NCBI GenBank assembly: GCA_025558095.1
Contig: JAIVFI010000007.1
Span: forward strand, 744,001 to 808,000
Direction of reading: 5' to 3'
Length of the DNA stretch: 64,000 nt
Source of the DNA: Hyaloraphidium curvatum SAG 235-1
Lineage: Eukaryota > Fungi > Monoblepharomycota
Shown here one piece after another: positions 60,882 through 64,000 of the stretch. Below the pieces are notes generated by a model, which was not told where the DNA came from, made no database searches, and saw nothing but the letters and a program-made list of their open reading frames with translations. Numbering within the stretch: position 1 is the first letter of the stretch; each line of letters starts with the position of its first letter. The position numbers were made by a program, and so were the translations under genes.

Positions 60882-61139
60882 AGGGTTGGGGTGGGGGCAA
60901 GTTGTTGCGAACCGGGGGGGGGTTGGCGCACCGGGCCCGAAGGCGACGGATGGGGAAAACCGCCACAGCGGACAATAGCGGACCAGAAGACAATTAAATC
61001 CGCGCCGTCCGATGGTCGGATCCGGATCAGCGTCCTTCGGCTCAATATTGGGCCGTCTCCAGAACTGGCGCCCAGAATGGCGAAGTGGCTGACAAAGAGT
61101 CAACGCTCCGTTGCCACTCCACTCCGCCACCGAAAACAC

Positions 61140-64000
61140 ATGCTCCGACGGCCCCTCCCGGCGGCCATGGGGCCCGGCGCCCGCCTCGCGCGGGCGCTTC
61201 CGCCCCTCGGCGCCCTGTCGTCCCCCGCGCTGCCGCCGCCGGCGCTGCCCGGGCCTGTTTTGCGGAGGTGCGCTCGGCCGCTCCGCTCTAAAATCACTCG
61301 CTCACACCGCACGGCAGGGCGGCGCTGCTCCGTTTGCAGCCGCCGATCGGCAATGCGGGGCGTCCGCGGTGCTGCGCCACGTGCGTCGGTGGGCCGCACG
61401 GCGCTGCGGCCGGGGGGCCGGGCCACCACGGCCACCCCGCCGGGGCGCACCCGCCCGGGCACTCGCACGGCCACGCGACCGCCGCCGGCCAGTCGCCGAT
61501 CGCCGCCGCCGTCGCCTCGGCCGCGGAGCTGCTGCCGCACCAGGGCATCCTCGAGAACTTTGTCCACCACAACCCGCTGCACGCGCTCGAGAACATGACC
61601 TTCCAGGGCGCGATCGACAGGGTGCTTGAGCTGCAGTCGTACCGTTCGCCGGGCAAGCGAGTGGAGCTGCTCGCCGACGTCGACCCGCGCAAGCGGGCCT
61701 CGGAGGCGCTGGCGGATCTGTGCTCGGCCTTCCTGGACCGCGGTGCCGCGAAATGGGTGCCCAAGTTCCGCGACCGCGGCTTCCTCCACTTCTTCGCGCG
61801 GCTCGAGGACCTGGGCCCGCGGGCGCCCTGGCGCGCCCACGCCCGCGAGCTCGCCGAGAAGATCCTGGCCGCGCGGATCGGGGAGGACGGCGACGGCGCG
61901 GCTGCCGTGCGGTTCGCCGAGGCCATCGTCGAGGAGAACCTGGCCTTCTTCGGGATCCCGTCACAGGACACGCACCGCGCCGTGCTGGCCATGCTCATGG
62001 ACCTGCCCGGCTGGTCCGGCATGTTCCACCGGATGGAGACACACCCCTCCGAGGCGCCCGCCGGCACCAGGGTGATCTTCATGGAGTACGTCGCCGTCCA
62101 GTCGATCATGCAGCGCTCGTCGATGGAGGCTCTAGCCCGGCACTCGGGCTGGAACCCCGATTGGCAGCCCTTCGGGGAGTGGCTCGCCCAGGCCGACCCC
62201 ATCCGGCCCAAGAAGCAGCTCAACTCGGTGCAGCACGCCAGCGCGGTGGCATACCTCGACCAGAGCTCGGAGCGGCGCGAGGCGCTCGAGAACGAGATCG
62301 AGACGTCGCTGCTCCAGGCCATCGGCAGCAAGGGGCTGCCCCCGGCGCTGCCCTACGGTCCCGCCGCGGCCGCTGCTGCCGCCACCGACTCTGCCGCCTC
62401 GAACCCCCCCCTCGCCGCCGCCTCCCCCGCTACCGCCTCTGCCGCCGCCCCACTCCCCCGCCCCAAGCTCCAGATGTACACCTGCATCGACGACCGGGAA
62501 TGCTCCCTCCGCCGGCACGTCGAGGCCGAGGACCCCGGCGCGATCCAGACCTTCGGCGTTGCCGGCTTCTTCGGCGTTCCCATCCGGTACCGCCCCGCCG
62601 ACGGCCGCGACGAGATGGTGCTCGCCCCCGAGGGCCAGAACCCCAACGCGGAGCTGGTCGAGGGCGAGGAGCGCAGCCACGAGGGCGAGGTGCGCGCGTA
62701 CAACCGCAGGCGCAGGGTGGTGGCCTGGTTCGCGCAGGCGTGGGAGCGCATGTCCTTCTCGCCGTCGGGGTCGCTGGTGCTCTCGGCGTTCGCGCCCTTC
62801 TCGCTGGCCAGGCTGGTGCTGACGGGCTACTCGCCCGACACCAAGCAGAAGGTCCGCGATTGGTTCAACCGCACCTTTTTGCCCAAGCCGCATACGGACT
62901 TTGACCTGCCCTTCACCGCGGACCGCGCCGCCGCGCTGCTCGCGCGCACCTTCAAGAGCATGGGCGCCGACCGCCGCTGGGCTCCGCTGGTGCTGGTCCT
63001 CGGCCACGGCGCCTCGTCGGTCAACAACCCCTACGCGGCGGCGTACAACTGCGGCGCGTGCGGCGGGCGCGAGGGCGGGCCCAACGCGAGGGTGTTTGCC
63101 CGCATGGCCAACGACCCCGCGGTGCGGGCGCACCTCAGGGACGCGCACGGGATCCCGGTGCCGGACGACACGGTGTTCGTCGGCGGGGCGCACAACACGA
63201 CGGTGGACACGGTCGAGTACTTCGACGAGGACGACATCCCCGCCTCGCACGCGGCCGCATTTGCCGAGGTCAAGGGGATCGTCGGCCGCGCGCTGGGCGA
63301 GAACGCGCTGGAGCGGTGCCACCGCTTCCTGCTGGCAAAGAACATCACCACGCCCGAGGCCGCCCTGCGGCACGTGTGGACCCGCTCGATCGACCCCGCG
63401 GAGGTGCGGCCCGAGCTCAACCATGCTTCCAACGCCGCGGTGGTGGTGGGGAGGAGGGACCTGACCAAGGGGAGCTTCTTTGACCGGCGCGTGTTCCTGC
63501 CTTCGTACGACCCCGGGGCGGATGACGCGGCGGGAACCAACCTCGAGGGCGTGCTCGCGCCGGCGCTGATCGTCTGCTCCGGGATCAACCTCGAGTACCT
63601 CTTCTCCACCATCTCGGCGGACCGGCACGGATCGGGCACCAAGACCCCGCTGAACGTGGTCGGCAACATCGCCGTGCTCCAGGGCACCTCGGGCGACCTC
63701 CGCACCGGCCTCCCCAGCCAGATGACCGAGATGCACGCGCCCGTGCGGGCCCTCTTCGTCGTGGACGCGCCGACGGCCCGGGTGGAGGCGGTCCTGGGGC
63801 GGCGCGAGGAGCTCCGCCGGCTGGTGCACAACGAGTGGGTGCGCCTCGTGGTCCGCGACCCCGACACGGGGGTGTTCTACCGGTACCACGATGGCGCCTA
63901 CTCCGAGGCCTCGGAGCACCTCGCCGCCCCTCCGGTGCCGCTGCGGACGCGGTACCAGATCCAGCGCGAGTACGGGCTCCGCGTCGCCCGCCGCGAGGCG
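61140..64000 (+). CDS. dabA: DabA (DUF2309/UPF0753) inorganic-carbon transporter catalytic subunit homolog with an N-terminal presequence; runs off the right edge
   Basis: Exon 61140-61267, 50-nt intron 61268-61317, then an open frame to 64000 (937 aa seen). Motifs: LPHQG..NFVHHNPLHALE, LPGWSG, CIDDRECSLRRHVE, TFGVAGFFG, GHGASSVNNPYAAAYNCGACGG, HNTT, EVRPEL, RVFLPSYDP, INLEYLFST, GSGTK, GDLRTGLPSQ, NEWV. Absent from the ORF track because there is no stop codon in the window. Confidence 0.93.

Follow-up and report, generated by a model that had tools for sequence, protein, structure and literature searches.

Coupling of carbonic anhydrase chemistry to a membrane potential has been described in bacteria. 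DAB2 (DabA2/DabB2) of Halothiobacillus neapolitanus is a vectorial carbonic anhydrase coupled to the proton motive force (PDB 9rd0; 10.1101/476713; 10.64898/2026.03.13.711513), and a cryo-electron microscopy preprint identified the zinc ligands of DabA2 together with an Asp-Arg dyad, which mutagenesis showed to be needed (10.64898/2026.03.13.711513). In Staphylococcus aureus, MpsAB is built from the same two families and supplies inorganic carbon to a heterotroph, a lifestyle that it shares with the fungus Hyaloraphidium curvatum. MpsAB has separate subunits and has been proposed to be Na+-coupled; it stands in for carbonic anhydrase where a species has none, but the H. curvatum genome keeps three beta-carbonic anhydrase genes. 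The same concept, a carbonic-anhydrase-like module placed on an antiporter-like subunit for directional CO2 hydration, is found in cyanobacterial NDH-1MS/CupA and in the gamma-carbonic anhydrase domain of complex I of plants and protists, which in mitochondria has been proposed to recycle respiratory CO2; these catalytic proteins are unrelated to DabA and belong to large respiratory-type complexes. The DAB/MpsAB literature searched here places the systems solely in bacteria and archaea, "throughout prokaryotic phyla" and in "14 bacterial phyla and Euryarchaeota."

Here, we analyzed a 64,000-nucleotide stretch of the H. curvatum SAG 235-1 genome (the window), which comprises bases 744001 to 808000 of contig 7; the genome assembly is 31.9 Mb in 55 contigs, and contig 7 measures 890 kb. 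The window ends within a gene that almost certainly encodes an expressed, eukaryotic, single-chain DabA-DabB protein. An earlier note, made from the window alone, had read the gene as a spliced DabA and knew of no characterized eukaryotic DAB system. None turned up in the literature that we searched, which omitted most subscription journals. The recognition of a eukaryotic DAB is new; the sequences themselves are not, and family proteins are already in public databases as hypothetical proteins. DNA of contig 7 covering the region past the window end was fetched as L003, and sequence searches used exon references (window:61319-64000 and L003:1320-5429) or the public gene model of the locus, P0001 (1,384 amino acids).

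Domains, splicing, and expression of the gene

The earlier note had assigned a frame of at least 937 amino acids to DabA. Exon 1 provides 43 codons of this frame (the split codon counted) and exon 2 another 894 within the window, and the assignment held in the profile search that the note had proposed. The part of exon 2 in the window matched PF10070 with a score of 592 bits, where the cut-off is 25 (E 2.1e-177), over profile positions 96 to 747 of 747, and profile positions 1 to 45 were matched separately. Unlike this unambiguous Pfam match, an NCBIfam scan of the DabA part gave no family at E 0.01 or better. Among solved structures, the DabA part matched DabA2 (PDB 9rd0_A; E 8e-57, 196 bits over residues 411 to 891). 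Residues C423, D425, R427, H597, and C612 of P0001 aligned to C351, D353, R355, H524, and C539 of DabA2, with the same 15-residue spacing between the His and Cys ligands; the zinc ligands, which the note had called intact, thus agree residue for residue with the DabA2 of PDB 9rd0. The catalytic residues were invariant in alignments of 14 and of 40 fusion homologs, and this invariance of the zinc site and the dyad across the family argues for retained catalysis. Judging from these alignments, the N-terminal two thirds of the protein is DabA, the beta-carbonic-anhydrase-like catalytic subunit, with a Cys-His-Cys zinc site and an Asp-Arg dyad.

Past base 64000, the frame stays open for another 1.4 kb and encodes a NuoL/ND5-like membrane domain. 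For the earlier note, a genome lacking any partner membrane subunit would have counted against its reading; the partner was found fused to the C terminus just past the window end, and the whole protein is a single polypeptide of about 1,390 amino acids with DabA first and the membrane domain second. The C-terminal part matched PF00361 (E 3e-10 to 5e-11), the family of NuoL/Mrp antiporter membrane proteins that includes DabB, and, among solved structures, ND5 of complex I (E 5e-19) and DabB2 (E 3e-12). By homology, then, the C-terminal third is a DabB-type membrane domain of the ion-conducting NuoL/ND5-like kind, and its roughly 460 residues compare with 551 in DabB2.

An AlphaFold2 model of P0001 residues 349 to 1354, made with a 40-sequence alignment, had a mean predicted local distance difference test score (pLDDT) of 81 and a predicted template modeling score of 0.81. 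It contained two beta-carbonic-anhydrase-like alpha/beta domains and about 14 helices in the membrane part. In DAB2, the beta-carbonic-anhydrase-like domain I carries a helix-loop-helix finger, and one is predicted likewise in the fungal protein (model helices 138 to 166 and 168 to 206, pLDDT 85 to 93, with a hydrophobic segment at P0001 residues 518 to 536). The predicted position is that of alpha16/alpha17 of DabA2, which insert into the membrane there. Foldseek assigned the membrane part to ND5/NuoL with a probability of 1.0; its matches for that part in the PDB were ND5/NuoL chains only, and the DAB2 entries 9rd0, 9rd8, and 9rd9, which had been found by sequence, were not among them. Along the antiporter-like charge path, a Lys in transmembrane helix 7 (TM7; K1082), K1158 in the TM10 region, and H1191 in TM11 were invariant in the family.

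The fungal protein thus resembles DAB2 in combining PF10070 with PF00361, in having the zinc site and Asp-Arg dyad in register, and in its NuoL-like partner, although similarity is low outside the catalytic core. DAB2 is bacterial and consists of two subunits, whereas the fungal protein is one A-to-B chain encoded by a nuclear, intron-bearing gene with a leader of about 95 residues. The structural work on DAB2 relied on an artificial B2-to-A2 fusion to obtain a stable particle (10.64898/2026.03.13.711513); the natural fungal fusion has the opposite order.

The DabA frame depends on splicing at the 5' end. Three-frame translation of the unspliced DNA takes the ATG frame to a stop at 61598 and shows a TAA at 61289 closing the DabA frame, and the first Met of the DabA frame falls downstream of the family-invariant motif LLPxQ..FVHHNPL. 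Therefore, a 50-nt 5' intron is required. P0001 uses the same 61267/61318 junction, and the assignment of this junction rests on the frame logic together with that public gene model.

Expression was examined in the one public run with the locus, available as assembled contigs, which we mapped on L003:1000-5600. One 3,869-nt transcript contig spans L003 2412 to 5318 and 5379 to 5600 and skips exactly 60 nt with GT..AG ends. Because the 60-nt 3' intron is spliced out in this contig, the material is RNA-derived, and because the single contig crosses the A/B junction, DabA and the membrane domain are on one transcript. Two points temper this result. The RNA nature of the run was a guess beforehand, for which the spliced joint now argues, and the first 270 nt of the gene lie outside the transcript contigs of this run, the start codon and the 50-nt intron included (depth 0 over L003 1154 to 1307; L003 1154 to 1424 uncovered). 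Of the 50-nt intron proposed in the earlier note, the GT..AG ends, the frame logic, and the junction in P0001 stand, while the junction has no transcript cover.

Given a GC content of about 72% in the gene, against 61 to 67% in most neighboring kilobases, and given that the closest homologs outside the fusion clade are bacterial, we considered whether the gene is an artefact, namely, bacterial contamination, part of a chimeric contig, or an unexpressed dead relic of gene transfer. This is extremely improbable. Two spliceosomal-type introns interrupt the gene, and one is spliced out in the transcript contig; the gene lies on an 890-kb contig among intron-bearing eukaryotic neighbors. Its GC content at third codon positions (0.95 in DabA) is paralleled by that of the last exon of the upstream neighbor (0.97). 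The frame is intact over about 1,390 codons with the functional residues conserved, and relatives occur on contigs of eukaryotes and in protein sets of eukaryotes labeled as transcripts. We rejected contamination and chimerism on the introns, the transcript contig, the eukaryotic neighbors, and the length of the contig; the earlier note had argued against contamination from the 50-nt intron, the codon usage, and the intron-rich neighbors.

The A-then-B fusion family and its bacterial relatives

A whole-frame homology search over about 5.8 billion proteins returned approximately 100 proteins with PF10070 followed by PF00361 (A then B) at 41 to 61% identity. These scored at least 684 bits, compared with at most 429 bits for unfused bacterial DabA, and an exhaustive HMMER search of 1.84 billion cluster representatives showed the same gap. 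Members with labels (EukProt, MMETSP) come from Paulinella chromatophora, P. micropora, Fabomonas tropica, and the dinoflagellate Apocalathium hangoei. All five genomic contexts that were checked look eukaryotic: they hold Las1, PIGBOS1, a Mito_carr fragment, a gypsy-type retroelement (reverse transcriptase), a peroxidase-kinase giant, and DNA_pol_phi, as well as JAB/MitMem_reg, WD40, AP2, Integrator subunit 3 (Ints3), and LIM_bind, and their gene calls are fragmented in the way typical of intron-bearing DNA under a prokaryotic gene caller. One homolog, P0003, comes from assembly GCA_016307145.1. A feature search of the ESM Atlas returned only actinobacterial-type B-A clusters, at 0.86 to 0.87 and thus below the trust line, and gave no taxon data for the A-B clade.

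The phylogeny suggested in the earlier note was built for the catalytic half by maximum likelihood (98 rows, 541 columns, LG+C20+F+G4, quick search, root not inferred). Its rows were 27 hand-named sequences where usable, named bacterial loci, and a random choice of 12 A-B fusions, 8 B-A fusions, and unfused DabA proteins (22 near, 14 far), with no further hits included. With these bacterial DabA relatives included, the sampled A-B fusions (26 of 26) fell on one side of a branch with a Shimodaira-Hasegawa-like approximate likelihood ratio test (SH-aLRT) support of 100, adjoining the long-DabA bacterial group, and the tree resolved no specific bacterial donor. On this phylogenetic evidence, the gene is part of a monophyletic family of A-B fusions of which every placeable member is eukaryotic. 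The earlier idea that a eukaryote had acquired DAB survives insofar as this is a true eukaryotic nuclear DabA; a single acquisition by one fungus does not, as the family spans diverse microbial eukaryotes.

The best relatives in GTDB, at 29 to 41% identity, are from Verrucomicrobiota, Planctomycetota, Acidobacteriota, Myxococcota, Bdellovibrionota, Bacteroidota, and Nitrosomonas. Among the best GTDB loci, 15 were inspected, and in 14 of them dabA (about 850 to 1,100 amino acids) and a short dabB (456 to 650 amino acids) are adjacent, in the same order, and in separate open reading frames; the fifteenth, L021, is broken across frames and unreadable. No bacterial A-B fusion was present in these 14 readable loci, and rare ones elsewhere are possible. 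The sister clade of the family, at 32 to 41% identity, consists of uncharacterized operons with a long DabA and a short DabB from the first five of these phyla (loci L016 to L095). They share the A-then-B order and the short DabB (456 to 481 amino acids) with the fungal gene but have separate genes, a further PF00361 gene, no leaders, and no introns.

That second antiporter-like PF00361 gene follows dabB at L016:8308-9633, L025:8235-9911, L045:8070-9569, L073:8834-10444, and L089:8327-9739, and the resulting three-gene DAB-type operon was not found in the literature searched. In two metagenome-assembled genomes of Verrucomicrobia (L016:3884-8314 and L017:3593-8308), dabA and dabB lie in one frame with a single stop codon between them, so that loss of this stop would produce an A-B fusion like that of the eukaryotes. 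The family would have arisen when a transferred dabA-dabB operon was turned into one reading frame. Compared with these bacteria, the eukaryotic family is DAB by domain content and active site, yet it is a single A-to-B chain that is spliced, bears a leader, and is without the extra antiporter-like subunit. A different arrangement was seen in P0113 (a Logan contig protein of 1,573 amino acids), in which a SulP-type anion transporter (PF00916, PF16983, and a STAS domain) is fused to DabA; this may be another coupling of a bicarbonate carrier to the DabA enzyme.

Proposed activity and location

From its homology to DAB2, the protein would act as a vectorial carbonic anhydrase: protons moving through the DabB part, down the membrane potential, would drive the DabA side to hydrate CO2 to bicarbonate in one direction. 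By this analogy, energy-coupled hydration of CO2 is the likely activity of the protein. Its N-terminal extension, like those of most family members, is basic and acid-free, which points to import into mitochondria. The inner membrane would then house the membrane part, and DabA would lie in the matrix, an arrangement that corresponds to the bacterial topology and to the direction of the proton gradient; CO2 would end up as bicarbonate trapped in the matrix, available to carboxylases or for pH control.

Among 66 A-B proteins with a complete N terminus, 53 had at least 20 residues (median, 45) before the conserved DabA start. By a crude composition count (at least four basic and at most one acidic residue at the N terminus) and not by a trained predictor, 31 of these 53 had basic, nonacidic N termini, against 2 of the 50 extended proteins among 148 unfused DabA proteins; the 2 exceptions look like truncated fusion-type proteins. 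A start of MLRR.. or MLRL.. was common among the extended A-B N termini. In P0001, the first acidic residue comes no earlier than position 104 and 5 of the first 40 residues are basic, and the Arg/Leu/Ala-rich N terminus without an acidic residue that the earlier note had described was seen in exon 1. The N termini of the family are probably organelle leaders. As the best explanation of the locus, we favor, with moderate confidence, a single-chain DAB that acts as a proton-driven CO2 hydratase in mitochondria and derives from a fused operon; for the mitochondrial location taken by itself, the N-terminal composition gives slightly better than an even chance. The fullest version is more tentative and falls somewhat short of an even chance: a single-chain carbonic anhydrase driven by membrane potential in the mitochondrial inner membrane (or perhaps the plastid envelope in some algae), acquired once from bacteria as an operon, fused, and then passed on or kept among fungi, Rhizaria, alveolates, and ancyromonads, which would trap CO2 as bicarbonate at the cost of the proton motive force.

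Several observations weigh against this explanation. Apart from the crudeness of the composition rule, the 94-residue leader of this protein is unusually rich in Pro, Gly, and His, about one fifth of the homologs have no extension, and a few have signal-peptide-like N termini. Given such homologs, lineages may differ in where the protein resides. It is also not obvious why a pump would be needed beside the three beta-carbonic anhydrase genes of the genome (PF00484; contig 17:531367-531876, minus strand; contig 5:811360-811818, plus strand; contig 44:25153-25611, plus strand). These genes mean that DAB does not replace carbonic anhydrase; a match to the alpha class was not present in the genome. 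Furthermore, a location in the plasma membrane has the same topology and is energetically equally workable.

A single-chain DAB pump might accordingly lie in the plasma membrane or another energized membrane, where the gradient of the fungal H+-ATPase would drive cytosolic hydration of incoming CO2 and a planktonic freshwater heterotroph could grow at air-level CO2, as MpsAB/DAB allow in heterotrophic bacteria. DabA would be on the negative, cytoplasm-like side just as at the inner mitochondrial membrane, and the bacterial system, which allows growth in air, resides in the cell membrane. The atypical leader and the homologs with no N-terminal extension or a hydrophobic one would fit this placement as well. 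It is nevertheless unlikely, given that basic, acid-free extensions are strongly enriched in the eukaryotic clade and that many homologs begin with the classic MLRR/MLRL pattern. In addition, a soluble N-terminal domain of about 900 amino acids precedes the membrane part with no signal peptide, and a large soluble N-terminal domain of this kind is not the usual layout of secretory-pathway proteins.

The coupling step carries its own reservations about a mitochondrial CO2 hydratase of DAB2 type. Where NuoL/ND5 has Glu in TM5 and Lys in TM11, the fungal protein has Ser and Arg, respectively. Within the nuclear assembly, PF00361 matched only the window gene and a second DAB gene described below, so the second PF00361 gene of the closest bacterial operons has no counterpart there; because it is lacking, the coupling may differ from that of DAB2. 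These features could instead indicate a DAB fold with another activity, such as a Na+/bicarbonate symporter, a CO2/bicarbonate sensor, or a membrane-potential generator running in reverse, and MpsAB has been interpreted as a Na+/HCO3- symporter and membrane-potential generator. We regard this as quite improbable, since the zinc-site and dyad residues are all invariant across the family and since DAB2 was reported to be sodium independent, with DabB2 itself lacking canonical ion-pair motifs (10.64898/2026.03.13.711513). As a side observation on the same PF00361 scan, no nad2, nad4, or nad5 was among the matches to the 55 contigs, and the mitochondrial genome therefore seems to be outside them.

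Signal-peptide-like N termini were seen in P0079, P0087, P0076, and P0080, and the two of these in the tree, P0076 and P0080, fall in a dinoflagellate subclade. In algae with secondary plastids, the protein may be directed to the plastid.

The favored single-chain mitochondrial hydratase suggests that some eukaryotes spend membrane potential on directional CO2 hydration, which is off the usual map of mitochondrial metabolism; if true, mitochondrial physiology would gain a CO2-handling step that is coupled to energy. The gene would also be a clean example of a two-gene bacterial operon surviving transfer to a eukaryote as one reading frame, in a genome that holds a second solution of the opposite order. 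DAB is a leading candidate for bicarbonate pumps to be engineered into plant chloroplasts (for example, PMC8438413). A natural one-gene, eukaryote-adapted DAB with an organelle leader would, if confirmed as such, be a ready-made part for engineering carbon-concentrating mechanisms.

A second DAB gene and the coordinates of the locus

On contig 18, three frames matched PF10070. This gene encodes a NuoL-like part first and DabA second (B-A order) and has several GT..AG intervals, and the catalytic motifs are intact (C-I-D-V-R, G-H-G, and C-G-A-C-G-G). The relatives of this copy are B-then-A fusions of Actinomycetota (Nanopelagicales, Lapillicoccus, Longivirga, and Micromonospora), and its NCBI model P0124 (1,290 amino acids, "hypothetical protein DFJ74DRAFT_133295") nested inside the actinobacterial B-A group with a support of 99 in the catalytic-half tree. 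Because of the B-A order and this nesting, the copy was acquired separately; as far as sequence can tell, the genome has two single-chain DAB genes with opposite domain orders and separate origins. Bacterial fusions are not without precedent, as a DabA:DabB fusion of Acidimicrobium was mentioned in the founding DAB preprint (10.1101/476713). The actinobacterial DabB-DabA fusions are, like the product of the window gene, natural single-chain DAB proteins, but they are bacterial, have the opposite order, and belong to a different DabA subfamily.

P0124 takes as its start a Met that is internal to the membrane domain, and it treats a 57-nt in-frame interval, GTACGT..CAG (L004:4322-4378), as coding sequence. 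For these reasons, the annotated protein is probably truncated at its N terminus and wrongly spliced. A candidate 5' intron of this copy, L004 3672 to 3793, does not preserve the frame with the nearest ATG.

The features of both genes are listed in Table 1. The ATG (61140), the first and last bases of the intron (61268 and 61317), and the zinc-site codons (TGC at 62483, CAC at 63005, and C-G-A-C at 63050-63061) of the window gene were all confirmed where the earlier note had them. The upstream neighbor is a zinc-binding dehydrogenase gene, split over two frames, whose transcript contig ends near window position 61030.

Table 1. Positions of the DAB gene features, in window coordinates unless L003 or L004 is given
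Feature	Position	Strand	Remarks
Possible 5' extension from an upstream in-frame ATG	61077..61139	+	Adds 21 residues, basic with no acidic one: MAKWLTKSQRSVATPLRHRKH; within open reading frame 60891-61598
Exon 1	61140..61267	+	ATG at 61140; Arg/Leu/Ala/Pro-rich N terminus without acidic residue
Intron 1 (50 nt)	61268..61317	+	GTGCGC...CTCAC...CAG; holds in-frame TAA at 61289
Exon 2, part in window	61318..64000	+	Entire DabA moiety; exon runs on to L003:5322 (contig 7 base 809321)
PF10070 DabA domain match	61661..63841	+	Residues 115-841 of exon-2 translation
C-I-D-D-R	62483..62497	+	Zinc ligand Cys 62483 (TGC, 62483-62485), Asp 62489, Arg 62495; C423/D425/R427 of P0001
Predicted membrane finger (two long helices, helix-loop-helix)	62672..62878	+	P0001 residues 486-554; AlphaFold2 model
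Zinc ligands His and Cys	63005..63052	+	H597 (CAC, 63005-63007, in G-H-G); C612 (63050, in C-G-A-C 63050-63061)
Last codon in window	63998..64000	+	DabA/DabB boundary, residue 928
DabB-like membrane domain, beyond window	L003:4002-5322	+	PF00361
3' intron (60 nt)	L003:5323-5382	+	GT..AG; removed in transcript contig; same in P0001
Last exon	L003:5383-5429	+	Followed by stop TGA at L003:5430-5432 (contig 7 base 809431)
Second DAB gene	L004:3600-8199		Contig 18, about 695600-700198; B then A; several introns

Judged from the reading frames, the start codon may be at 61077, 61140, or 61167, all of which are candidates; P0001 starts at the last of these, the second Met. Within the leader, the region from 61360 to 61500 encodes a Gly/Pro/His-rich stretch, GGPGHHGHPAGAHPPGHSHGH, that has no counterpart in the homologs and may be a lineage-specific low-complexity or metal-binding insert.

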